From the sequence record LC768500.1: a DNA stretch of 64,000 bases. One strand, written 5' to 3'. This document shows, piece after piece, positions 1,261-64,000 of the stretch (positions are counted from its first letter, which is position 1; each line of letters opens with the position of its first letter). Below the pieces are notes generated by a model, which saw only the letters and a list, made by a program, of their open reading frames with translations, was not told the DNA's origin and did no database searches. The translations under genes were made by a program, and so were the position numbers.

Positions 1261-1511
1261 TTCCTAACGACAGAGTGATGTTATTAGTAAAGATCTTTGG
1301 ACTCCCTGTTGATTAACTAGCGACCCAACCTCATCTCTTTGAACCTCCTTACCACGAGCGAGATAGCCAAAGTAGCTAGAGATTTTCAGGGGGTTCAATC
1401 CCCATTATTCGTTAATCTTATTAGACCCATTGTCCTTAGCCATGTAGCGACGGCCATTCTCCTGTGACAGACAAGTTTTTGTTCAATGGGATAGATTAAC
1501 GTTTTTCTTCA

Positions 1512-1584
1512 CGTCGTATTATCTGATGAGTCTTCGACGCTAAACAAGACGAAACCTAATGAATCTATTTTATTAGGTCATAAT
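1512..1584 (+). ncRNA. type I hammerhead ribozyme, predicted cleavage after GUC at C1579
   Basis: Core CUGAUGA 1523-29 and GAAA 1551-54; stem I 1518-22/1580-84; stem II 1530-34/1546-50; stem III 1554-60/1572-78; 5-bp pseudoknot CGUCG 1512-16/CGACG 1535-39. Confidence 0.92.
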
Positions 1585-2230
1585 TCAACCTAAGCGTTGA
1601 ACGGGCAGTTAGGGGCAATGGTCCCCGAGGTCTTCAGCTTCTTCGCCTGCCCGCACTAAAAAGTTCTTTCATGATTAGGAGTGCCGCACTCTACGAGCGG
1701 ACAATAAGCAACCGAAAGTGGGAGAGAAAGAAGCGTGTCTGGTCGCTTGCCGGAAAGTTGGTTCAGGCGGGTTTCTTCCCAACCCAAACGACGCTGCCCA
1801 AGATAGGGCTGCAAGTCGTATTAGCGAATTATACCGGTATGCGGGGTTTCCGCGATAAACCGGGTTAGCTACGGGTAAGAAACCGGCCGGAGTAATCAGC
1901 CTTTCGTATTCGGGTAACGTGAGTTATTGTAGAGATATCTCTGAGGGTTAGGCCAACCCCCGACGTTCTCCGAGTCCGAAGGGAAGCTTGCTCAGCTTCG
2001 TAGGAACTCCAAAATCTCAGACGGTCACACCTCGCAATCTTACGGCAGTATGATTGCCTATTCGTCCTTTGTCGCTCACCAAGGGGCGAGTAGGAAACCT
2101 CTGCCACGGCGTTTCGTTTGCCTTTTACCATTGCTTTTGTTATAACCTCTCTGTTTGAGTTGAGTGTTAACTTCCCCAAGAGTGTAACCTGTTATCTCTC
2201 TCTTCGTGAGGAGTCGGAGATAATGGGGTA
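1580..2230 (+). ncRNA. putative large structured non-coding RNA (family unknown)
   Basis: Many nested helices (1602-08/1647-53, 1770-77/1877-84, 1900-06/1977-83, 1908-13/1970-75, 1916-20/1963-67, 2044-49/2053-58); no credible ORF; boundaries approximate. Confidence 0.55.
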
Positions 2231-2249
2231 AATTCTTAGGAGGTTCGTT

Positions 2250-2438
2250 ATGTACACATACCAGTATACCGTGCGATACCGAATACCTAATTCTGTGTTT
2301 ACGACTTACAGCGGAGAAATTACTTCCGACTGTTTGCTCACTAACGCTAATCGCATCTTTGACGTTTTGCGCACTGAGGTTCATAAAGCTACTAACGTTA
2401 ACTCGTTTAGCATTACGAACTTTAAGCTGAAAGAATAA
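2250..2438 (+). CDS. small hypothetical protein (62 aa)
   Basis: Strong SD AGGAGG upstream of ATG. Confidence 0.75.
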   Translation: MYTYQYTVRYRIPNSVFTTYSGEITSDCLLTNANRIFDVLRTEVHKATNVNSFSITNFKLKE

Positions 2439-2606
2439 GTCGAGCTACGCGCTCAACCTACCTTAGGGCCGGAAGTAGTTACGACTTAGGGGGAAAGAAG
2501 AGTCGTGCCTTTAAGTACCCCAACCCAATTCGTGTGGTGATCTCTCACATCATCTCATGAATATCGCCACATCATCATTAAAGTTCTACCATGAATTTTT
2601 ATTCCT

Positions 2607-2638
2607 TCCAGTAGGGTTCGGCCCTACTGGACTTTTTT
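2607..2638 (+). terminator. intrinsic terminator
   Basis: TCCAGTAGGG/CCCTACTGGA 10-bp stem followed by T-tract. Confidence 0.8.
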
Positions 2639-2769
2639 CGCGTTTTTTAAATCGGCAGTTGTTTAATTATGTCAGAACTAGATTTTTTCAGTTCTAAATT
2701 ATGGTAATGTAAAGCAAAAGATAATGCTTTCCATTCCAACTATCATAATTTCTTTTAGGAGCTAGATCA

Positions 2770-3732
2770 ATGAGTACATTACGTGTTTACGCGTGCGGCG
2801 GTACTGGTATTAATATCGCGTCTAAATGGATTGCCACCGGTGCGAATACGCTTATTCGTAAAGCCCAGTTCATTGGACTGGACAGCAGTGAAAACAACAA
2901 ACCGCATAACGACGCCTTTAAGGTCGAACGTCCTGAAGGAACTCGTGGCGGCGGTAAGGAACGTAAGCTGATCGGTAAAATTGCCGCCGGGTTTATTGAC
3001 AGTATTTTGACCAAACATAAACCGGGCGATTTCAACCTGATCATCATGAACGCGGCAGGCGCTACCGGGAGTACGTTCGGCCCGACTCTGATCAACCGTC
3101 TCCTCTCTCAAGGTGTTCCGGTTATCGCCCTGGTCGTAGGCGACCTGACCTCTGAACTGGAAAACTACAACACGGTTAAAACGTTTGAAAGCCTGGACAA
3201 CCAGCGCATCAATCTGAACGTGCCGGTTATCATCGACTACGTGGACAACGCCAAATATCCCAGCCGCGGATTGGCCGACAAATACGCCATCGGCCGTCTT
3301 GATATCCTGAGCCTGTTCTTAACCGACGAACATGAAGAAAGCGATTTCCAAGACATCCGGAACCTGTTCTATTACAACCAGGTTACCAAGGCGGCGCCTA
3401 CTCTTGCTCGTATCGACTTCTTGACCGATACTCAGTTAGACAACGTTACTCCAGGGCTGGTTGCTGAATTTGGTTTGTATCGTAAAGCGGACGATATCGG
3501 CAGTCATATTAAAAATCTGGCATACCGTTCGACCGGCGTTATTCAGGAAGGTAGCACTAACTTCCCGGCTGGAATAGAACATCTCCACATGGTCTTTGAT
3601 CATGATGCGACGATCAAAGATATCCTGGTTCTGGTTCAGGATCTTAAAGATATTGAGATCCAAAATAACGAACGTTTTAAATCCGCTCAGCAGGTTGGAA
3701 ACGGCGGCGATGATTCTGGAATGTCCTACTAA
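2770..3732 (+). CDS. phuZ: PhuZ phage tubulin
   Basis: ACGGTG N-terminal loop, GLDSS, GGGK, tubulin signature AAGATGST, acidic C-tail; size and context match. Confidence 0.93.
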   Translation: MSTLRVYACGGTGINIASKWIATGANTLIRKAQFIGLDSSENNKPHNDAFKVERPEGTRGGGKERKLIGKIAAGFIDSILTKHKPGDFNLIIMNAAGATGSTFGPTLINRLLSQGVPVIALVVGDLTSELENYNTVKTFESLDNQRINLNVPVIIDYVDNAKYPSRGLADKYAIGRLDILSLFLTDEHEESDFQDIRNLFYYNQVTKAAPTLARIDFLTDTQLDNVTPGLVAEFGLYRKADDIGSHIKNLAYRSTGVIQEGSTNFPAGIEHLHMVFDHDATIKDILVLVQDLKDIEIQNNERFKSAQQVGNGGDDSGMSY

Positions 3733-3741
3733 GTAAAACAA

Positions 3742-3776
3742 TACTGCTACAGCCCTTCTATGGGGCTGTAGCAGTA
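3742..3776. terminator. long hairpin terminator after phuZ
   Basis: 14-bp stem TACTGCTACAGCCC/GGGCTGTAGCAGTA, downstream T-rich. Confidence 0.8.
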
Positions 3777-3846
3777 GTTCTTTATTTTTTGCATCTATCT
3801 ATAGGTCTAATTAAAAAGTCGCTTATAAACCTTTACAGGAAGCTTT

Positions 3847-4152
3847 ATGATAAAAACAACCAGAGTGGTTAAAACGTTGAGTTTTCGCGAATATCATTCT
3901 GTGATACTTAATGTCGATAGTAACGTTGCTACAGCAGAAAGGTTGCTCCTCAAGGAGGCTTTAATCGAACACGGTTATCAGATCGACGACGGGTTACCTG
4001 AGAGCTATCCTCTTTATCCAGAATCACTAAGGGAATTCAGAGATATGTTGAAGACCAGTATCGAACACATGACTTTGGGAATTCCCACAAACGCCAAGGT
4101 CGAATACATCAGTCCTACACTTGGACTCTTCAATATCATTTTTACTTACTAA
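3847..4152 (+). CDS. hypothetical protein
   Basis: ORF in co-oriented gene run. Confidence 0.65.
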   Translation: MIKTTRVVKTLSFREYHSVILNVDSNVATAERLLLKEALIEHGYQIDDGLPESYPLYPESLREFRDMLKTSIEHMTLGIPTNAKVEYISPTLGLFNIIFTY

Positions 4153-10754: not shown

Positions 10755-11013
10755 TGTAGTCCTGTTAGTAACTCAGTATTATGTTATTACACATATTAAT
10801 TATATGTAAACAAATACACCTCTCCGAAAGGAGGGGAGACCAATGCCGCGGAGTAGAAATCCGTTAAGCATAAAATCGATCAGTTTTTACTACCCCTAAA
10901 TAATTTCAGACCGATATTATTTAATCGGATAAACAACACAAATGTTTATCTGTTTTGATCAAACTTAATAACATCCCCCTTTATAAAAAGCTAATAGCTA
11001 TTAGGAGTTAAGA

Positions 11014-14516: not shown

Positions 14517-15946
14517 AAATCAAGAAGTGAGAGTTCCATACTTTTGTGAGAGAAAGCATGAGAACTATTGAGTTTGAAAGAACACCACGTGAAACAGTAC
14601 TTTTTGAAGAAGACGGTTGGGCTCATCACCCGACTATCAAAAACATCCTATTAAAGGAGAAAGGAAACACTTATCGTTTATTTACCGACGGTAAATGGAA
14701 CGAAGTTATTCCCGAACAAAAATCGAGATACATTTATGTATCCTTTGGCGGGATAGAAATACCCCTTCATCAATTAAAGCTGGAAACCTTTTTAGAAAGA
14801 CCAGCTTCTACCGAAGGACTTAAATTGTTAGGCAATCATATCGATGGTGATATCTTTAATAACGACATCGATAACCTTGAATGGGTGACCTACAGAGGAA
14901 ACATCATTCATGCCTATGAATCAGGATTAAGATCAGATAATAAGCCGTTGGTTTTGGTCGATTTACATTCAGGCGAGGAATTTCCGTTCTATAGCCTAAA
15001 TGAATGTGCTAGATATCTGAAACTTAACCCCTCTAAGATAACCCAGTTTTTGAGAAAGAAGAGAAGTTACCCATTCCAGTGGAAATACGATTTCAAACTA
15101 GATGGGTTGTCTCCTAATAATCTGACCTCTAAAGACGTTGGTAAGGCATCGCAAAATAAACCAAGACCTTTTATTATGCGAAACATAAATACCGGCGAAG
15201 AAAGAGAACTTGGGCTCTATCGTTCGATTAGAAGAATTTGGGGCGTGTCGGAAAGAACTCTCCAAAAAGTTTTAAGCGGTAAAATGAAGATAGATGATGT
15301 TTGGGAATTTGTGCCGATTACTGATCCCGACAGACTTATCCATCTTTCTAATACACTGCCAGACATAAAGGAGGCGTTTGATACAACTTCTAATAGAAAA
15401 AATATGGCGGCTAAAAAGTCTAAAGCGATTAAAGTAACGGGTCCTGATGAAACCACGTTCTATTCGTCTATTAAAGACTTTTCACAGAAAAACGGATTCA
15501 ACGCCGCAACCATACAAAAGTTTATTTATAAGAACCCGGGGAAACCCTGGAAGAATTATGTTATCACGTATGTTTAACTCTCACTTCTTTGGCCCAGTAG
15601 ACGCGAAAGCTCTGCTGCGTACTCTCTCTAATTGCTGGAAACTCCTAAAGCTCGTTCACCTCGTATAGAGGGGTCGAAAGACAGAAACAACGAACGAGAT
15701 ATCTCACGCTAACCAATAATGCTAAAAGATAAATAATGGGTTACCTAGCAGCGAACCCTACCTCGGTAGGAGACGTTCAACGACTAGAGCTGAAACGCTC
15801 GTAGGATCCTAGTGTGGATCCGAAATGGGAGAGGACCTAAGTTTGACAGTAGTCAAATATGGTTAAGATATAGTCTGTGCCCTCAGGAAATCTGAGGGAG
15901 GGTGTCTCAGCACACCTGCTCCATATGGAACGGAGTGGACAATCAG
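14517..15946 (+). mobile_element. group I intron A (IA2-like) with HNH ORF in loop L1
   Basis: 5' exon ends in U, omega-G 15946; AAUUGCUGGAAA, GUUCAACGACUA 15775-86, AAGAUAUAGUCU 15865-76; 14-bp stem 14522-35/15576-89 closes the ORF loop. Confidence 0.92.
14558..15577 (+). CDS. intron-encoded HNH homing endonuclease (I-HmuI-like, NUMOD1/IENR1-type repeats)
   Basis: NHIDGDIFNNDIDNLEWVT..N..HA; repeated D..SGE/N.NTGE modules; GTG 14546 is an alternative start. Confidence 0.9.
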   Translation: MRTIEFERTPRETVLFEEDGWAHHPTIKNILLKEKGNTYRLFTDGKWNEVIPEQKSRYIYVSFGGIEIPLHQLKLETFLERPASTEGLKLLGNHIDGDIFNNDIDNLEWVTYRGNIIHAYESGLRSDNKPLVLVDLHSGEEFPFYSLNECARYLKLNPSKITQFLRKKRSYPFQWKYDFKLDGLSPNNLTSKDVGKASQNKPRPFIMRNINTGEERELGLYRSIRRIWGVSERTLQKVLSGKMKIDDVWEFVPITDPDRLIHLSNTLPDIKEAFDTTSNRKNMAAKKSKAIKVTGPDETTFYSSIKDFSQKNGFNAATIQKFIYKNPGKPWKNYVITYV

Positions 15947-16458: not shown

Positions 16459-17080
16459 CGCGTTTAGCTTTAGTTGTGCCGGCGCTATTGACGAAGGTCG
16501 AATGCGTCAGTATGCCGGCTACGTTCAAATGAATTTTGATAACGTGAAAGGAATGGGAGGTTGGCTGGCGAAAGAAGCAGAAAAAACGTTAGACCGATTT
16601 TCTAACTTCATGAATTCCAGGGCGTGGGAGTTATCCAAAATCCTAACGGGGAATGGCGATGGTGAATACGTAGGACGATTTGACATCGGTTATTTAGGTT
16701 CCCTCAACGCTCAACAGCAAGCCCAGGGTTTCATGCGGGATTACATCATGGCTAACCCATTGGTTATGCAGATGTATCTGGATGGAGGATTGGAAGGCTA
16801 CGGTGGTGAGTTCTCCCCGTTCTGTAATGCCGTTGGTAAGAACAACGTTTTCTATCGTAACGCCACCCATGGTATAGTACAAACTGAAACTAAAGACGAC
16901 GTTCAGAAAACCTGGTTCAGTCACTTTGGTGATGTGCCCGGTACAGGAATGTCCTTTAGGGAACAAGCAGACATCATGAGAACTTGGAAAGCGACCAATC
17001 ACCTGATAGGTTCTCAGCTCTTTGATATGACCTCACCATCGAATAAAAAGATGAATGAGGATAACGAAGAGGAAACATAA
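16445..17080 (+). CDS. conserved hypothetical protein
   Basis: 211-aa ORF, SD GAGGA, core-block position. Confidence 0.75.
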   Translation: MNAADAFSFSCAGAIDEGRMRQYAGYVQMNFDNVKGMGGWLAKEAEKTLDRFSNFMNSRAWELSKILTGNGDGEYVGRFDIGYLGSLNAQQQAQGFMRDYIMANPLVMQMYLDGGLEGYGGEFSPFCNAVGKNNVFYRNATHGIVQTETKDDVQKTWFSHFGDVPGTGMSFREQADIMRTWKATNHLIGSQLFDMTSPSNKKMNEDNEEET

Positions 17081-17492
17081 ACATTTTTTGGGGGAGGAAA
17101 CTCCCCCATTTAACATCGAGAGTAAACTTATGAATAGCGAACAAACCAAACCCATGCATAGTGTTTTTATGCAAATCATCAGTTCCGAAGAAATCGGTAA
17201 TTTGAAGAATGCTGTTCGGAATACCGAATTCCTTTTAGCCGAGTTAGGCGAATCGGAAGACGGCAAACCACTGGATCCATCCAATCTGATCTTTATTGTA
17301 ACCGACATGTCTTTTGACGAACACGGAAACTTGATGGGAAGAGTAACTCCCACCGGCCCATACAAGGACAAGGGACGGGAATGGATTTCGACTAAAAAAT
17401 ATAAAACACCTATTTTTAAGTTTATTCCGAGAGTGGCCACGAATAACCGCAATTGGACCTTCATCAATAAACTCGACGTGGTGGTCAAATAA
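17055..17492 (+). CDS. hypothetical protein
   Basis: ORF in operon; start uncertain. Confidence 0.6.
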   Translation: MRITKRKHKHFLGEETPPFNIESKLMNSEQTKPMHSVFMQIISSEEIGNLKNAVRNTEFLLAELGESEDGKPLDPSNLIFIVTDMSFDEHGNLMGRVTPTGPYKDKGREWISTKKYKTPIFKFIPRVATNNRNWTFINKLDVVVK

Positions 17493-17854
17493 TGGAAACC
17501 ACTCGGGATTATACGGCGAAGATCAAATGGCCTTTTGTTGTTGTGTTTAATCTCAATGATGGTCCGGAGGAAACTTCCTCCGTGATCATTAAAACCAGGA
17601 TCCCTTCTGGCGGATATAAGGAATTCCACATCTACTTAAAAGATTTAATCGACCGTGCTCGTTTAAACGTTCGAGGGTCAATCTCGGATAAAGATTTCTT
17701 AACCGATATTAGCGAGTATTTTATTTCGTCTGTTGCTTCTAAATCGGCGGATAAGAAAACCTTGGCTGAGGCCTGTCGGTCGGTTTTAGAAGGAAACGTG
17801 TTTAATCGTAAAATATTCGTTCCCTTTTACGGACTCGGGCCGAGAGAAGAATAA
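17492..17854 (+). CDS. hypothetical protein
   Basis: TAATG coupling with previous ORF. Confidence 0.7.
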   Translation: METTRDYTAKIKWPFVVVFNLNDGPEETSSVIIKTRIPSGGYKEFHIYLKDLIDRARLNVRGSISDKDFLTDISEYFISSVASKSADKKTLAEACRSVLEGNVFNRKIFVPFYGLGPREE

Positions 17855-28690: not shown

Positions 28691-30515
28691 TCGCCCCACA
28701 AGTATCCGTTATCTTAAAATGATGTTGGGGTTGTAAAGACTTTTTGAAGGAGGTCTTTATGACGGTGAAATTGATAGGAAATCCCGATATAGAAGTAGAC
28801 TTACTCGAAAAGTCTTTATTTATAAAGGGAGAAGAAATTATTGAAGGGAACGCCTTCCGAGTAGATTTATTCGGTGGAAGTTTCCAAGTGACACGGGAAT
28901 GGCTAATCTCGTTCGCTCGTTATAACTTGGATATCCCAAAAGAGCATGTCGATAAAATAACCTTTATTCGATTTGCTAAAACATGGTCTCCGTTTCGTAA
29001 AACCAATAAGCGATACGAAATACCCGTCTTTGACGAACCTATGGTTTCTGAAGACGGATACGCGATCATACCAACCGATTTTGAATATGAAATTAGTCGG
29101 GAAGGAGTTATTAGAAATCGTAAGACCAAACGAATCGCTCCATTGTACGAGAAAGACTACCTTTTTTGTTCGCTAAAGGGAGAGGAAAGGTTACATCGTA
29201 CTGTGGCTCTTGTTTGGTGCTATAACGAGAACTTCGAAACACGACCGATTGTTAATCATAAAGATGGAAATAAGCTTAATCCTCACGCAGATAACTTGGA
29301 ATGGTCATCGTTTTCTTTAAACGCAATTCATGCGTTTAAAGAAGGGCTTAGGGATGATAATAAGCCTTGTGTGATGAGGAACATCTTTACCGGAGAGGTT
29401 ACTGAGTTTTATTCGGTAAGTGCCGTTGCTTATGAATTCGGACTAGGATTTGAGTCAGCCTTCGCGTACCTTAAACGTAAAATGCGGCAATCCCCTTTCA
29501 TGAAAGAATATGAGTTTGTGTTGAAAGGAGATCCTTGGGAAATTCCGTTGGGCGGTATAAAGGGAGTAAGAGGGCGGTATCTCTTCACTATAGAAAAACC
29601 AAATGGTGAAGTGGTATACCGGACCAATATCCCTAAAATCATATCCGAATTCAAGTTATGGAATCTCCCGAGTTGGTCGAAGGATTGCGTTGTAGAAAGG
29701 ATGAAGGAAGAACATCCCGATTGGTCGATTTCTGTTATTGATTACTTTAGGGCGGGCGAGTATCAGGTCAAAAACCTACAAACCGGAGAAGTGATCGATT
29801 TCGTAAAACCCGCCGAAGTATCCGGGTTGATAGGCGTCCCTCGTCAAACCATTAATAAGTGGTTAACCGAAAAACAATTTAACGTCAATCACAACGGTTG
29901 GGTATTCAGGGAGAAATCATCTTCTGAATGGGATGAGGTTTTCCCGAAACCCAATTCTAAGAAAGCGGTATTGGTGACCGACATCAATACAGGTAAAGTG
30001 TCTGAGTTTGAATCCGTAATAGCCGCGGCTTCTCACTTTGGTATTAACAAACGTTCAGTGGGTAGAAGGATACTATCCGGAAGTCTTTTCGAGAGCAAGA
30101 AGTTTAGTTACAAGCCCCAACATCCTTCATAAGACATTTGATATTTGTGAGACAGGGCCGGCTAGGCACGAAAGTCCTAGACCGTTATCTCTTTGAATTG
30201 CTGGAAAAACCACAAAAGTCTGATGCCTGCTTAGCAGGAGGGGATAACCCGGAAATAAGTTCAGACCTGACCTATGCTAACCAATAACGCTAAGGGTCGT
30301 TAAAAAGGGTGGATCAGCAGCGAACCCTACTTCGGTAGGAGGCGTTCAACGACTAAGGCCTAACCAGCCTGTACTGGAGACATGATGTTTCTGGGAAGTG
30401 GAGAGAGACCTAAGTTCGGCTCTAGCCGAATATGGTTAAGATATAGTCTGTTCCCTAATAACACTAGGGCGGGTGTCTTCGCACACCGGGTTCCACGATG
30501 GAACTGGACAAAAAG
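28691..30515 (+). mobile_element. group I intron C (IA2-like) with HNH ORF in loop L1
   Basis: Exon ends GCU, omega-G 30515; GUUCAACGACUA 30344-55, AAGAUAUAGUCU 30438-49; 10-bp stem 28697-706/30140-49. Confidence 0.92.
28759..30132 (+). CDS. intron-encoded HNH homing endonuclease with multiple NUMOD1/IENR1-type repeats
   Basis: RLHRTVA...VNHKDGNKLNPHADNLEW..N..HA; repeats N..TGEV/QTGEV/NTGKV; SD AAGGAGG. Confidence 0.9.
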   Translation: MTVKLIGNPDIEVDLLEKSLFIKGEEIIEGNAFRVDLFGGSFQVTREWLISFARYNLDIPKEHVDKITFIRFAKTWSPFRKTNKRYEIPVFDEPMVSEDGYAIIPTDFEYEISREGVIRNRKTKRIAPLYEKDYLFCSLKGEERLHRTVALVWCYNENFETRPIVNHKDGNKLNPHADNLEWSSFSLNAIHAFKEGLRDDNKPCVMRNIFTGEVTEFYSVSAVAYEFGLGFESAFAYLKRKMRQSPFMKEYEFVLKGDPWEIPLGGIKGVRGRYLFTIEKPNGEVVYRTNIPKIISEFKLWNLPSWSKDCVVERMKEEHPDWSISVIDYFRAGEYQVKNLQTGEVIDFVKPAEVSGLIGVPRQTINKWLTEKQFNVNHNGWVFREKSSSEWDEVFPKPNSKKAVLVTDINTGKVSEFESVIAAASHFGINKRSVGRRILSGSLFESKKFSYKPQHPS

Positions 30516-31400: not shown

Positions 31401-33363
31401 TTATGCGAATCTGACCGAACGAGAGCTCCTGACCAAATGGTGGAAGAATCGTGTTAAAGTTGTGGTTAAGGATGACCACGGTGAAACACTAGAAACCGAT
31501 TCTTACGTGTTGATGGTGAATTGGTATGGATTATCGATTCACCGAGCCTATAACAAAATCCCTTATTCCATACAAGAGATATTCCAAGCCAAAGTCTGGA
31601 ATGATAAAACAATACAGCGACCTATTAACTGGTTCCTCCAAAATCAGTTGATGCCGTTAATTGACGATCCGGTTGAAACCGATCGGATTAAGCAAATGAT
31701 TTACGAGTGGCAGATTAAACTTAATAACTTCCTGCACTTCTTTGGTCAAGGAGCGGAGATATCGGCGCTGGGGTACGATATACTCGACGTCATGGATCAT
31801 CCTTTGATGAGGAGTATCAAAGAACGCATCCATTCTCTCGAAATAACCATCGATGAAGGGGAGGCGGAATTTAAATCGCTTATCCTTGAGCATGAAGATT
31901 TCGATAGCAACACCTTTGCTTTACTCGCTAGGACCGGATCGGTTTCGGTCAATCAGGGCTTCCAAACCGTTATTATCAGGGGATCGGTATTTGACCTAAA
32001 CAACCAGATACTCCCCAATCCTGTAGAAGCATCATTTGCAGATGGTTTGGTTAATTTGGCGGATGCTTTGGGTGAGAGTAAAGCGGCGGGTAAGAGTCTC
32101 ATCAGTAACGGCCGCGCATTGGAAGATTCAGAGTGGTTCCATAGGAAATTGCATATTGTGACTTCCGTGGTGACAGATCTGCATCATCAGACTGATTGCG
32201 GGACAACCTTCACAGTACCGATTAAAATTCTTTCCAGGGATATGCTTTCTGCTATGAAGGGCAAGTATATCGTGGAAGAAGGCAAGTTGGTCTTATTAAC
32301 CGATCAAACCATTAAACGTTACCATAAAGGCGATGTTCTTAATATGAGGTCGGTTAAAGGATGCCTCACTCACACTCCTGGATCTCCCTGTGGGGTGTGT
32401 TACGGCAAGATGAAGGCCTCGATACCGTATAACGTCATCATGATGAAATCTGCGAATCCTGGCATGTATTCCGCCACGGCAATTGCAGAACGTATTGGCC
32501 AGGCTCTTCTTTCGACCAAACACTTCATGAGACACACTCAAACTATTCCGTTCTTTGTTAAGCCAACAGATGCGGATGTGATCTCCTCTGATACGAATTA
32601 CATTTTCTTGAATAAAGAAATGTGTCGTAAAGGAACTAAGGTCATATTGGATGGGTTGATCGGAAGCGAGCTTTCTGACTTCCGAAATCTGGAATCTCTG
32701 GATGAGATCAATTTCGATCAATTGCGGACATTCCCTTCTGTTGCGTTTGAATATGAAACGGAAGACCCGATGACCGAAGGTATTGCGATCACACAACGTA
32801 ATATCACCACGTCTGTATCCTCTCGTAGTGCAAGGATGTCAAGAGAGTTTATCGAGTACGCCATCTCTAAAGGGTGGGAGAAAGATAAAAAGTTGATTAC
32901 GGTCGATCTGTCTGATTATCGTAGTGAGGATCCGTTGTTCTTCCTCCCTTATGTACATGAGGACCTGGATCAGTATCGTCGTCAAATCGAAGGATTTGTC
33001 TCTTTCTCCAATCGTAACAACGCTTGGAAGCAAAGGGAGATAACTCCTGAGATCTTCGGGGAAGTATTAGGCGAAATGTGGAGCTTAGTAAACCGTAAGT
33101 TTGCCGGGATCAACATTATTCACTCCGAAATTATCCTTTACTCCCTGTTAACGAGGGATCCGTTTAACGGATTGTATAGGATACCTAGAGGTGACGAGCC
33201 CCAGTATTTCTCCGCTTTCACGCATTGCATTAACAATCGAGGAATAGGGACCCTGGCGATTTACCAGAAGCAAAATCAGATACTCGAATCCCCTGAGACG
33301 TATGATATTAAAGAACGTCAAGGAGGCGCCTTTGAGTGTTATCTGGCTCCAGCCGTCCTATAG
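31384..33363 (+). CDS. rpoC: nvRNAP beta' C-terminal subunit (phiKZ gp74-like)
   Basis: DCGT, CGVCYG Zn site, AIAERIGQALLSTKH (cf. GEPGTQLTM). Confidence 0.85.
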   Translation: MILLRDYANLTERELLTKWWKNRVKVVVKDDHGETLETDSYVLMVNWYGLSIHRAYNKIPYSIQEIFQAKVWNDKTIQRPINWFLQNQLMPLIDDPVETDRIKQMIYEWQIKLNNFLHFFGQGAEISALGYDILDVMDHPLMRSIKERIHSLEITIDEGEAEFKSLILEHEDFDSNTFALLARTGSVSVNQGFQTVIIRGSVFDLNNQILPNPVEASFADGLVNLADALGESKAAGKSLISNGRALEDSEWFHRKLHIVTSVVTDLHHQTDCGTTFTVPIKILSRDMLSAMKGKYIVEEGKLVLLTDQTIKRYHKGDVLNMRSVKGCLTHTPGSPCGVCYGKMKASIPYNVIMMKSANPGMYSATAIAERIGQALLSTKHFMRHTQTIPFFVKPTDADVISSDTNYIFLNKEMCRKGTKVILDGLIGSELSDFRNLESLDEINFDQLRTFPSVAFEYETEDPMTEGIAITQRNITTSVSSRSARMSREFIEYAISKGWEKDKKLITVDLSDYRSEDPLFFLPYVHEDLDQYRRQIEGFVSFSNRNNAWKQREITPEIFGEVLGEMWSLVNRKFAGINIIHSEIILYSLLTRDPFNGLYRIPRGDEPQYFSAFTHCINNRGIGTLAIYQKQNQILESPETYDIKERQGGAFECYLAPAVL

Positions 33364-33379
33364 ACAATAGGAGTTAACC

Positions 33380-34918
33380 GTGCGTAAGACGGTGGTCATT
33401 AACAAAGCGCACAATTACCTCAGAATAACGGATTATTCTGAGGAGTTTGTGAACAGAGTGATAATGCCGTTCTGTCGACGGTATCTTTATAAGTACGCCA
33501 AAAAACCTATCCCCGGAACAAGAAAAACTCAGAGTTACGTGAGTCATGTGTTCGCTCGTATGAATAATGACAAAACGGAATTCCGTATATCCGCGGGTCT
33601 TCTAAAAGAATTCCTGAGTTTTATGGAATATTGCGGGTACGCCCCCAACAGGGCGGAAATCCGAGATGTCCCTGAAATTATTCCGGCCAAGGTTGACTTT
33701 AAATGGAAGCCGCCTTTTGGTGAACTGAGGGAACACCAGGTGGATTGGTGTGAGTATCAGTTAGCGCCGGGTGGGTTAAAGGTCAATTCGGCTTTAATGG
33801 GTCAGGGTAAGAGTATTATGGCCACGCACACCATGCTTAATATGGGGGTGAGGACGCTGATAACTGCTCTTCCTAGATACATTCCGGTCTGGAGCAAATG
33901 TCTTTTCGAATACCTTGATCTGAAAATAGAAGATGTGATTTATGTCGAATCAGGTCAGATAGAGGAGATTGCTGAAAATATTCAGAATGGGATTATTAAC
34001 CCTAAAATCATTATCCTTCCGTTGACTAGGATCGACACGCACTACAAACGGATGAGGGAGGATGATGCTGTTCCTGACTTAGATGAACTCTATGCTAAGA
34101 TGGGAATCGGGCTGAGGATCATGGATGAAGGACATGAATCTGTTTATCAGGTTTATATGTCCATGCTCTACGGCAATTTCTCGAAGACCCTGGCACTGTC
34201 AGCAACCCTGAAAGCAGACGATGCTTTACAGAACCGTATCTATTCGTACATCTATCCTCAAAGCATTCGGTTAAAAGATGGCGTGGCGAAGAAATACATC
34301 GATGTTTACGCCTACCATCACTGGATTGACATTAGGAAGTTCAGAATTAACCCCAGAGGATTTGGGGGGTATAACCACGTGAAGTTCGAACAAGGGATTA
34401 TGAAGTCCCCTTACCTGCTCGGTAGGTATTACGAACTCTGTAAACAGGCGTTTGAAGAGTTTTATGTCAAAGACTTGTTACCCGAGCAAAAAGCCCTCTG
34501 GTTCTTTGCTACAGTAGAAATGTGTGTCAACATGTTGGAGTTCTTTAAAAGGGACTACCCGGAAATGGATTTCGGGAAATACACCAACGAGGAATCGTCT
34601 AAGGCAGATACCAAGGATAATTACCTCAAGCACCAAGTCTTGATTACCACTCCTCAGAGTTGCAGCACCGGTAAAGATATTGAGAAACTCTACGTGGCGT
34701 TTAGTCCCTATGCGGTTTCTTCTAAACAGCGTAACGCTCAGTCATTAGGGCGTTTAAGGGAAATAACAAAATGGTGGCCTGACCTTTCTCCTAAGTACGT
34801 TTACTTCGTTTGTCAGAACGTCGACAAGCAAGTTGACTACCACCGTAAACGAATGGAAGAGTTTGCGGATAAAGCGAAGAGCATCACCAATATCAATAGC
34901 GGGCATTCTATTCCTTAG
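33380..34918 (+). CDS. superfamily 2 helicase (phiKZ gp75-like)
   Basis: MGQGKS, DEGH, SAT, QSLGRLR motifs. Confidence 0.9.
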   Translation: MRKTVVINKAHNYLRITDYSEEFVNRVIMPFCRRYLYKYAKKPIPGTRKTQSYVSHVFARMNNDKTEFRISAGLLKEFLSFMEYCGYAPNRAEIRDVPEIIPAKVDFKWKPPFGELREHQVDWCEYQLAPGGLKVNSALMGQGKSIMATHTMLNMGVRTLITALPRYIPVWSKCLFEYLDLKIEDVIYVESGQIEEIAENIQNGIINPKIIILPLTRIDTHYKRMREDDAVPDLDELYAKMGIGLRIMDEGHESVYQVYMSMLYGNFSKTLALSATLKADDALQNRIYSYIYPQSIRLKDGVAKKYIDVYAYHHWIDIRKFRINPRGFGGYNHVKFEQGIMKSPYLLGRYYELCKQAFEEFYVKDLLPEQKALWFFATVEMCVNMLEFFKRDYPEMDFGKYTNEESSKADTKDNYLKHQVLITTPQSCSTGKDIEKLYVAFSPYAVSSKQRNAQSLGRLREITKWWPDLSPKYVYFVCQNVDKQVDYHRKRMEEFADKAKSITNINSGHSIP

Positions 34919-62672: not shown

Positions 62673-62677
62673 CAACG

Positions 62678-62706
62678 AGAATCTGGCCCCAGAAAGGCCA
62701 GATTCT
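62678..62706. terminator. hairpin
   Basis: 11-bp stem AGAATCTGGCC/GGCCAGATTCT. Confidence 0.65.
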
Positions 62707-62741
62707 ATGACCTTATATTTTTAATAGAAGAGGACGTTATT

Positions 62742-64000
62742 GTGCTCAGAACGTTTGTAAAGGCAGGGGAAACGTACCGTAACGCTCTTTATCCTGCAAT
62801 CATCGAATCCCTTCGTCGGGTTTTAGAATTCTACTCGCTGACAGGGATTGACAAAGTGTATTTCAACGGCGATGCAGAAGTCTCTAAGCAACTTTTTTCT
62901 GACATCGATAGTGGAGTAAGGGCGGACAGACAAACCGATTTCAAATTAATCAATAAACTTTATATCGTCACCGAAGAGCAACCTTCCGTCTTTAACAATG
63001 GTTACGGTAATGCCCAGAGAACGATTACCAACAGACCGGTGTGGAAGACGGACGACGATAAAGTTATGATCATCCCTACCTACGATGGAAGAGAGATCAC
63101 GGTTGATGTTAACGCCCACTTCAGGACAAGGCAAGAAGCCCGTAATTTCCGTAACAGTTTAGAGCAGGCTAGAAATCGTCAGGCTAACGACCTTAATTTC
63201 AACGCCCACGTCCATTACCCGCTGAACCTGGAAATTATCTACTTCCTTACCACCATTCACAAACGGTTAGTGAACGCAGGCCAGGTTACCGATGAGTTTG
63301 CCCCATGGTTCTTTAAGAATGCGTGCATGCCATTCACCACGATAACTAACCCGGCCGGGAATAACACTCAGGTCGTTTTACAACAAAGACGTGATGAGAT
63401 TGGGATATTCTTTGAAGAACCCACTATTGCGTTGACCCGTAAATCCAACGAATATCTGGGCCGGTACGAAGTTTCTTTCCGTTATAAGTTCTACTGGAAC
63501 GAACAGACCGATTGGGACTTGCGTTACCCTCTAATGATCTATCAACAGCCGTTAGATCAAATGTACATGCCTAAACCTCAGTTGGGTTACCGGAATGGGT
63601 TTAACCCCCATGCTTTTGTAGAGTTGGGTATGATTAACTTGTTGCTGAAAAGCAGGACAAAACATTCACCTTACTATCAGCGAATTCCGGAATACGACAT
63701 GTGGGTTCCACCAGGACAACGTTGGTTAGACACGCAGTTAACAATCGCGATTACGGTTCGAGACGAGGCGAACGTCCCTCTTATTAATATCGTTAATGAT
63801 ATTCCTAATTGGACCTGGGATGACGACTTCTTGGAACACATGTTAAAGTATCGCGAAAACCTCTTCACCCGCCATGAAGACATTTTCCATATTCAGGTTT
63901 ATTCTGATGACATTTTAGTGCTTCCAGAACAACTCAGTATGGATGAGGAAGGGAACATACTTCTTAATCGTAAACCGACGATGGGTAATGTATATCGGGT
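62742..64000 (+). CDS. probable virion structural protein, runs off the window end (not in ORF track)
   Basis: GTG with GAGGA SD; translated start and end are in the same open frame (MLRTFVK...MGNVYR). Confidence 0.75.
   Translation, partial: MLRTFVKAGETYRNALYPAIIESLRRVLEFYSLTGIDKVYFNGDAEVSKQLFSDIDSGVRADRQTDFKLINKLYIVTEEQPSVFNNGYGNAQRTITNRPVWKTDDDKVMIIPTYDGREITVDVNAHFRTRQEARNFRNSLEQARNRQANDLNFNAHVHYPLNLEIIYFLTTIHKRLVNAGQVTDEFAPWFFKNACMPFTTITNPAGNNTQVVLQQRRDEIGIFFEEPTIALTRKSNEYLGRYEVSFRYKFYWNEQTDWDLRYPLMIYQQPLDQMYMPKPQLGYRNGFNPHAFVELGMINLLLKSRTKHSPYYQRIPEYDMWVPPGQRWLDTQLTIAITVRDEANVPLINIVNDIPNWTWDDDFLEHMLKYRENLFTRHEDIFHIQVYSDDILVLPEQLSMDEEGNILLNRKPTMGNVYR

Follow-up and report, generated by a model that had tools for sequence, protein, structure and literature searches.

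Hammerhead ribozymes have been documented between the genes of bacteriophages (Perreault et al. 2011, PMC3088659), and in the haloviruses HF1 and HF2 one lies 13 nucleotides (nt) upstream of the start codon of a helicase gene, and the 5′ end of the transcript maps to the cut site there (PMC3088659). Here we describe a hammerhead and the RNA that follows it in the first 64,000 bases (the window) of the genome of Klebsiella phage phiKp_32 (LC768500.1), a Miami-like (Miamivirus), nucleus-forming jumbo phage. As in the earlier examples (PMC3088659), the ribozyme lies between phage genes, is predicted to set the 5′ end of the downstream RNA and has a pseudoknot-type tertiary contact. The usual phage hammerhead is separated from the next gene by a few tens of bases, as in 36 metagenomic examples described below, whereas here 350–670 nt of conserved, multi-domain RNA, depending on the lineage, precede an open reading frame (ORF) for a protein of 62 amino acids (aa). 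This long, strongly conserved fold between the hammerhead cut and the ORF is the new element of the locus. We read it, with a probability of about 0.5, as a ribozyme-trimmed, stabilized giant leader acting in cis on the 62-aa protein.

Large structured RNAs of phages offer a second comparison. Like ROOL and GOLLD (PMC12286853), the RNA is phage-encoded, falls in the range of 500–800 nt, has several domains and contains no ORF. Unlike them, it is preceded by a ribozyme, is contiguous with an ORF and is known from one narrow phage lineage; ROOL and GOLLD often adjoin tRNA islands, whereas this RNA is not near tRNA genes and matches neither of their covariance models. The RAGATH motifs are structured RNAs from the gene neighborhoods of hammerhead and twister ribozymes, one of which, RAGATH-18, was later recognized as a TnpB guide RNA (PMC11061315). 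The resemblance is that an unassigned structured RNA and a self-cleaving ribozyme are genomically linked in phage-like DNA, but no RAGATH model matches the body of the present RNA and no nuclease gene is adjacent. In the twin-ribozyme introns, the GIR1 lariat-capping ribozyme lies upstream of a homing-endonuclease mRNA and makes its protective 5′ end. The likeness lies in the predicted use of a ribozyme to give the mRNA behind it an unusual, protective 5′ end; GIR1 differs in its ribozyme class, in its eukaryotic intron context and in making a 2′,5′ lariat cap rather than the 5′-OH predicted here. Finally, the ompA leader carries a 5′-terminal stabilizer hairpin, and such stabilizers are tens of bases long. 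Here, too, no more than about 4 nt separate a hairpin from a 5′ end predicted not to be a monophosphate, but the RNA is about ten times the size of such stabilizers, and its conservation goes far beyond what stabilization requires. Phage hammerheads are common and their purpose is largely obscure; here one of them precedes a long RNA fold on which selection is very strong, so that the locus offers a defined setting for measuring ribozyme cleavage, RNA stability and small-protein expression side by side.

Relatives of the window fall into two close clades and two more distant lineages. The first clade (99.4–99.8% identity to the window) holds Miami, YC1 and BUCTxx100, and the second (93–95% identity) KPN8, VB_ZK_P1, the Logan contig L013 and L040, a 252-kb metagenome contig. 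A protein search with the tubulin PhuZ recovered two intermediate relatives from Logan assemblies. In L010, PhuZ is 74% identical and the contig begins within the RNA, at window position 1964. The metagenomic contig L011, whose PhuZ is 49% identical, carries the complete unit, in the order GC-rich pre-leader, hammerhead (cut after C594), 350-nt RNA (595–945), 63-aa ORF, terminator and phuZ. The comparison comprises three independent lineages (the window clade, L010 and L011), with L010 partial.

The ribozyme consists of the following parts:

1512–1584, plus strand: type I hammerhead ribozyme, read directly from the sequence
1512–1516 with 1535–1539, plus strand: pseudoknot of 5 base pairs (bp) between the 5′ flank and loop II
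1518–1522 with 1580–1584, plus strand: stem I (open)
1523–1529, plus strand: core, CUGAUGA
1530–1534 with 1546–1550, plus strand: stem II
1551–1554, plus strand: GAAA
1555–1563 with 1569–1577, plus strand: stem III

The cleavage triplet GUC ends at C1579 and is followed by an A, and A1554 pairs with U1578. The geometry of the canonical core and GAAA places the predicted cut after C1579, so that the downstream RNA would begin at A1580, where a reading of the sequence alone had put it. Every hammerhead pair is retained across six sequences, distant L011 included, whose catalytic core is identical to that of the window. In stem I, pair 1518/1584 occurs as A-U, G-U and G-C and pair 1520/1582 as U-A or C-G; in the loop II pseudoknot, pair 1516/1535 is G-C in some sequences and U-A in others, having changed in L011. 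Between the clades, the hammerhead diverges by 0–1.4%. In Rfam it stays below the gathering scores, with 24.2 bits for Hammerhead_3 (cut-off 48.5; E = 0.024) and 21 bits for RAGATH-1-hammerhead (cut-off 56.3), low values that we ascribe to its long loop II and permuted topology. By all criteria of sequence and structure, we assign it to the hammerhead class despite these scores. A second hammerhead was not found in the 64-kb window.

Downstream of the cut, the RNA and the module that joins it to the ribosome-binding site (RBS) of the ORF are built as follows:

1580–2116, plus strand: conserved structured RNA body, delimited by divergence, pairing-preserving substitutions and correspondence with L010 and L011
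1584–1601, plus strand: 5′ hairpin
1602–1653, plus strand: branched domain, with CGGGCAG/CUGCCCG at 1602–1608/1647–1653
1684–1700, plus strand: hairpin
1738–1754, plus strand: core hairpin, then AAGUUG
1766–1888, plus strand: three-way domain, with GGUUUCUU/AAGAAACC at 1770–1777/1877–1884
1889–2010, plus strand: domain holding stacked helices at 1901–1982, including GGGUU/AACCC
2034–2057 and 2058–2093, plus strand: hairpins
2117–2158, plus strand: fast-evolving, U-rich linker with a 9-nt indel (38–48% divergence)
2159–2249, plus strand: conserved RBS-proximal module (3–4% divergence), with a hairpin at 2191–2202/2213–2224, UAAUGG and the Shine–Dalgarno (SD) sequence AGGAGG at 2238–2243

The helix GGUUUCUU/AAGAAACC encloses ACGAC/GUCGU and CCGGU/ACCGG (1834–1838/1859–1863). 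The helices named in the sequence-only reading were all found where it had placed them, and both single-sequence and alignment folding recovered them. Its extent for the RNA, about 600 nt at 1580–2230, needs revision: the start holds, but the conserved block is 1487–2116 and is followed by the freely evolving linker 2117–2158 and then by the conserved module 2159–2249. Its suggested pseudoknot between CCUAA and UUAGG, invariant within the close clade and without a counterpart in L011, is possible. RNAalifold also proposed that the hammerhead core pairs over a long distance with the region of the start codon; this pairing, too, has no counterpart in L011 and was dropped.

Conservation of the RNA body is pronounced. 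Over 1580–2116 the two clades differ by 1.9–2.0%; third codon positions diverge between them by 9–19% in phuZ, by 10–15% in the 62-aa ORF and by 38% in the upstream gene for a 244-aa protein (orf244); in the flanking linkers the divergence is 28–48%. We counted the fate of pairs by script in an alignment of 778 columns. In the RNAalifold structure, 11 of the pairs that vary do so by way of G-U states and stay paired; on the minus strand, each of these states would read as a C-A mismatch. Three further pairs are changed on both sides (1838/1859 from U-A to C-G, 2148/2158 and 2149/2157), and two are broken. When the structure was predicted from the window only, 11 of the 15 substitutions at paired sites preserved pairing (null mean 8.0, P = 0.007); with the partners slid by 1–3 columns, or with the minus strand read instead, 2–6 substitutions were kept. 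Since pairing is kept on the plus strand and divergence is low, the comparison indicates purifying selection on a plus-strand RNA structure, and we consider the RNA a genuine, conserved, multi-domain structure of that strand.

Folding energy was one of the yardsticks by which the structure was originally to be judged. For 1580–2116 the plus strand has a z-score of −3.4 against shuffled sequences and the minus strand one of −2.6, better than shuffles but uninformative as a test of structure because ordinary coding windows reach the same scores: among 30 control windows of the same genome (mean −1.8, standard deviation 1.6), six were as low or lower. We regard conservation, and not folding energy, as the strong evidence for the fold. 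As the mean of the controls shows, the genome overall folds better than its own shuffles; very negative values were obtained for 17000–17536 (−5.5) and 33000–33536 (−5.3), and values of about −4 for the windows at 11000, 19000 and 29000.

The same substitutions bear on the idea that the conservation is that of a protein gene, namely the minus-strand coding sequences (CDS) annotated here in Miami and KPN8, or of a DNA-level element such as an origin or a packaging site. A minus-strand ORF of 104 aa is intact in eight of eight close genomes, the 9-nt indel preserves its frame, and in its conserved part synonymous and non-synonymous changes stand at 5:4. Yet its start codon is TTG, neither Pfam nor PHROG assigns it to a family, and in L010 and L011 nothing corresponds to it except for 36 identical bases; the portion encoding its N terminus falls within the linker that diverges by 38–48%, where most changes replace an amino acid. 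Reading the sequence by eye, with no repeat scan run, revealed neither iterons nor an AT-rich unwinding element. The G-U-mediated substitutions fit a plus-strand RNA only, and we give the protein-gene and DNA-element explanations hardly any credence. The CDS in question (gp268/gp269 of Miami, L001 1860–2431; KPN8_253/KPN8_254 of KPN8, L003 1925–2420), whose coordinates conflict between GenBank records, are probably spurious, created by the GC-rich structured RNA on the opposite strand, and the annotation of these records would need correcting. A 65-aa ORF on the plus strand is interrupted by stop codons in VB_ZK_P1 and L013. That the stretch is GC-richer (52.5% versus 44% for the window) and holds no credible ORF, both remarked on previously, is borne out: it is among only six stretches of at least 300 nt in the 64 kb without a 90-aa ORF.

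The fold adjoins a gene. The ORF and its terminator are:

2250–2438, plus strand: 62-aa ORF, conserved in all three lineages
2607–2640, plus strand: strong intrinsic terminator from the terminator scan, an 11-bp stem (2607–2631) followed by a U-run

Equivalent terminators lie 3′ of the ORF in L010 (589–630) and L011 (1269–1310), and the scan found none between RNA and ORF. In all three lineages the RNA adjoins the RBS of a 62–63-aa ORF, and the order RNA, RBS hairpin, ORF, terminator is kept; in the window and L011 the last hairpin ends in the conserved UAAUGG 22–25 nt before the AUG (22 nt in L011). The proteins of L011 and L010 are 34–63% identical to that of the window, with 18 invariant residues in the alignment, and no homologs of the 62-aa protein were found outside this phage lineage. 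RNA and small protein were found only together, and only in this lineage. With the RNA on the strand of the ORF, contiguous with its RBS, separated from it by no terminator and linked to it in the relatives, the arrangement would make the RNA, at least physically, the hammerhead-processed giant 5′ leader of a small-protein gene next to phuZ. Of the ribozyme-matured large non-coding RNA (ncRNA) proposed from the sequence, what survives is a conserved plus-strand RNA at a well-formed cut site; support for a free ncRNA is no more than partial, as the RNA abuts the RBS of an ORF with no terminator in between. The roles suggested with it, as decoy, scaffold or nucleus component, are conjectural. 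At 2223–2231, inside the UAAUGG motif and just downstream of a GGAG, lies a two-codon mini-ORF, AUG GGG UAA; in L011 the corresponding AUG (919) shares its frame with the 63-aa ORF, and in L010 it opens an ORF of four codons.

The AlphaFold2 model of the 62-aa protein (pLDDT 92.7) shows a compact strand-strand-helix-strand fold whose best PDB matches are to the rRNA-binding ribosomal protein LX/eL20 (TM-score 0.6–0.72, E 0.03–1). This predicted resemblance is weak; the fold itself is generic, and numerous unnamed small phage proteins are equally good matches.

The distant lineages allow the fold to be compared helix by helix. The RNAs downstream of the cut in the window and L011 share the colinear motifs CGAAAG, CUGGUCGCU..CCGG.AAGUUG, GCGGGU, GCCUAUU and UAAUGGG, and their structural modules, matched manually with these anchors, occur in the same order:

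5′ hairpin directly after the cut: UUCAAC/GUUGAA in the window, ACGAC/GUCGU in L011
Closed domain: 52 nt in the window, 21 nt in L011
Hairpin followed by GAC: CCGC/GCGG in the window, CAGGC/GCCUG in L011
Core hairpin: 1738–1754 in the window, 714–730 in L011, 6 bp in each
Stem after GCGGGU: base GGC/GCC with a 110-nt three-way junction in the window, base AGC/GCU with a simple hairpin in L011
Terminal hairpin beginning CCUAUU: present in the window and in L011

L011 rebuilds four of these elements from different sequence, namely the 5′, core and terminal hairpins and the stem at the base of the three-way domain. In the core hairpin, one pair changes from U-A to C-G and another from U-G to U-A between the window and L011, and within the close clade a third pair changes from U-G to C-G. 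L010 has hairpins matching 2034–2057, 2058–2093 and 2191–2224, with rebuilt sequence between conserved flanks, and in the last of these, proximal to the RBS, the pairs are compensatory. The window and L010 have an extra similar hairpin and a freely evolving linker; L011 has neither. A covariance model of the close clade (1697–1781), searched against both strands of 61.7 kb, found its best match at the syntenic site of L011 (683–744; 16.7 bits, rough E of about 0.05). The correspondence is consistent with a shared fold in each of these helices, although with three lineages, one of them partial, the covariation is only suggestive and not statistically rigorous over the whole fold.

These observations can be combined into a path by which the RNA would serve the 62-aa gene. 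A plus-strand transcript would run through the conserved pre-leader and the pseudoknot-stabilized hammerhead, and self-cleavage after C1579 would shed the upstream RNA and leave a 5′-OH end, 3–4 unpaired bases before the stable hairpin 1584–1601. In L011 the 5′ hairpin shares bases with the 3′ strand of stem I and so can form only once the ribozyme has released its product. Entry of ribonuclease (RNase) E is stimulated by a 5′-monophosphate and blocked by a 5′-terminal stem-loop, and a 5′-OH and a 5′ hairpin each slow decay; by these rules of enterobacterial mRNA decay, the downstream RNA should be long-lived. The mature RNA would measure about 1.06 kb and comprise the 540-nt fold (350–670 nt across lineages), the linker, the hairpin-RBS module, the 62-aa ORF and the terminator. 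The fold would protect the mRNA of the 62-aa protein and set its translation in cis, and the protein may in turn bind the fold, either as feedback or to form a ribonucleoprotein (RNP).

Several points weigh against this proposal. Mere stabilization gives no reason to keep 540 nt at 2% divergence, and selection of this strength is more readily expected of a molecule that has its own function than of a passive leader. The freely evolving linker 2117–2158 may hold a 3′ processing site that releases a separate ncRNA. The folding z-score is unremarkable for this genome, and the covariation among three lineages, one of them partial, is suggestive but falls short of statistical rigor for the fold as a whole. 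We found no transcriptome of a Miami-like phage in the literature, and transcription, cleavage in vivo, the 3′ end, stabilization and any regulatory effect rest on inference, whereas the structure, its strand, its conservation, the geometry of the cut site and the physical connection with the ORF are shown by the sequence comparison. Because a leader leaves 540 nt at 2% divergence unexplained, we reserve a substantial probability, though one well short of even, for a function of the fold itself.

Such a function would be that of a free-standing large ncRNA or RNP of the kind of ROOL and GOLLD, with its 5′ end made by the hammerhead and its 3′ end by a nuclease cut within 2117–2158: a trans-acting RNA of 540 nt that would work as a scaffold, a cage or a sponge, or together with the 62-aa protein, and have only its promoter in common with the ORF. 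We hold this possibility tentatively. It would account for the very strong purifying selection over 540 nt next to a linker that evolves freely and for a modular architecture in which variable peripheral domains surround short conserved junctions, as in ornate RNAs; it would also suit an RNA encoded by a phage, as ROOL and GOLLD are (PMC12286853), and a neighboring small protein whose confident model best matches the rRNA-binding LX/eL20. The linker, however, is missing from L011, where 22 nt separate the final hairpin from the AUG; the fold is followed by neither a terminator nor a conserved processing signal; and the LX-like fold is generic, being common to many unnamed small phage proteins. 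Genomic context points both ways: the distant chimallivirus contig L059 (PhuZ 35% identical) has a 2.1-kb ORF-free gap (1902–4000) at the equivalent place upstream of phuZ, with tRNA genes at 2525–2596 and 3062–3133, but no tRNA was found in the 64-kb window. If the fold did act on its own, it would be a jumbo-phage addition to the few large bacterial and phage RNAs (ROOL, GOLLD and OLE), differing from these in its defined 5′ end and candidate protein partner, and the first such RNA in nucleus-forming phages, where RNA traffic between nucleus and cytoplasm remains a question. It is likewise conceivable, at similarly modest odds, that it represents a new class of large, ribozyme-matured RNA peculiar to one lineage of nucleus-forming jumbo phages and expressed from the locus directly upstream of phuZ, with its own function as a self-assembling RNA, as a sponge or in an RNP with the LX-like protein.

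Family searches yielded no assignment for the RNA. At gathering thresholds, Rfam has no family over the RNA body in the window, and a scan of 1250–2800 with permissive filters (E ≤ 10) gave no match to GOLLD, ROOL, RNase P, tmRNA or introns, in keeping with the sequence-only reading, which could not assign a class; OLE, raiA, HEARO, 6S and riboswitches likewise lacked a covariance-model match. In L010 and L011 no large-RNA family was found at E ≤ 0.1. The failure of every large-RNA model to match also counts against kinship with ROOL or GOLLD.

These scans also bear on three further possibilities: that the RNA derives from an intron by decay, that it is left over from a mobile RNA element or that it is another ribozyme, of an unfamiliar class. 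The genome does contain two group I introns, and the closest isolated relatives (Aphrodite1, PDCC-1 and RisingSun) lack the unit. But the scan that finds both true introns gives no intron match here even at E ≤ 10, no interrupted host gene is present and the purifying selection is strong. Moreover, with a single hammerhead, excision and circularization are not possible. We consider an origin of this kind very improbable.

Beyond the close relatives, the unit appears to be narrowly distributed. Upstream of phuZ in Aphrodite1, PDCC-1 and RisingSun, whose PhuZ is 35–43% identical, neither nhmmer nor a regular expression for the hammerhead detected it, and the more distant PhuZ contigs L057 and L058 have no gap at this place. 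IMG/VR gave no homologous unit in protein-anchored scans with the 244-aa protein and PhuZ and no match in DNA-pattern scans with the core motif and the hammerhead. With the L011 unit as query against phages, blastn matched only the hammerhead of the Miami clade. In GTDB genomes, the core motif had six matches, all of which we rejected as chance occurrences in GC-rich coding DNA. The hammerhead pattern occurs at 37 loci in JGI metagenomes, of which only the 252-kb Miami-like contig L040 is related; the other 36 (L014–L050 minus L040) are unrelated type I hammerheads with the same stem II start, from rumen, gut and marine contigs. Most of these cut 20–60 nt upstream of a start codon and appear to be 5′-end processing sites of mRNAs. 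The literature that we searched describes neither a hammerhead nor a structured RNA in a Miami-like phage or in any other nucleus-forming phage. On these comparisons, we regard the RNA as an undescribed structured family of narrow distribution, with no homolog beyond this phage lineage in the databases searched.

Upstream of the ribozyme, the pre-hammerhead leader contains:

1277–1429, plus strand: conserved pre-hammerhead block (2% divergence between clades)
1389–1403, plus strand: T-loop-like hairpin GGGGGUUCAAUCCCC, then a U-rich run, listed in the terminator scan
1430–1486, plus strand: fast-evolving linker (28% divergence between clades)

ARAGORN called no tRNA at hairpin 1389–1403, which possibly serves the 244-aa gene as a weak terminator. 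At 1343–1355, the leader carries the 13-mer ACCUCCUUACCAC, nine nucleotides of which are identical to the 3′ end of 16S rRNA (the anti-SD sequence). It recurs in L011 at 470–482 (519–526 of L011 is also listed for this element) and is the sole significant similarity between the two pre-hammerhead leaders, with a chance expectation that we estimate at about 0.001. This motif raises the possibility of a ribozyme-gated translational switch, in which the anti-SD-like ACCUCCUUACC would pair with GGUAA...AGGAGG at the RBS of the ORF until cleavage severs the clamp and licenses translation. RNAduplex does pair the 13-mer with the RBS region, at −18.5 kcal/mol in the window and −19.6 kcal/mol in L011. 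Any anti-SD-like sequence pairs with any SD sequence, however, and the best RNAduplex partner in the window lies elsewhere, at 1743–1768. The KPN8 clade carries G2228A and has lost one nucleotide of the SD, changes that weaken the duplex and are not compensated in the 13-mer, for which reason we rate such a switch as unlikely; it would also leave 540 nt of conserved fold unexplained.

Some further features of the window and its relatives may be recorded. The tubulin PhuZ is encoded at 2770–3732. Two of the other ORF-free stretches are the group I introns, at 15572–15898 and 30118–30469, both above the Rfam gathering score (58.6 and 51.3 bits). Another stretch without an ORF of at least 90 aa, 1.3 kb long and with a GC content of 44%, occupies 62673–64000 and reaches the window end. 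One of the relatives, OR529409.1 (L006), is titled ‘Stenotrophomonas phage BUCTxx100’, a surprising host label for a sequence that over this region is 99.7% identical to the Klebsiella phages. Bases 1–72 of LC768500 are Illumina adapter, an assembly artefact, and genuine phage DNA starts at 73. It opens with an alternating CG/TG tract of about 45 nt (73–115), which is conserved in Miami (L001, from 329 onward).

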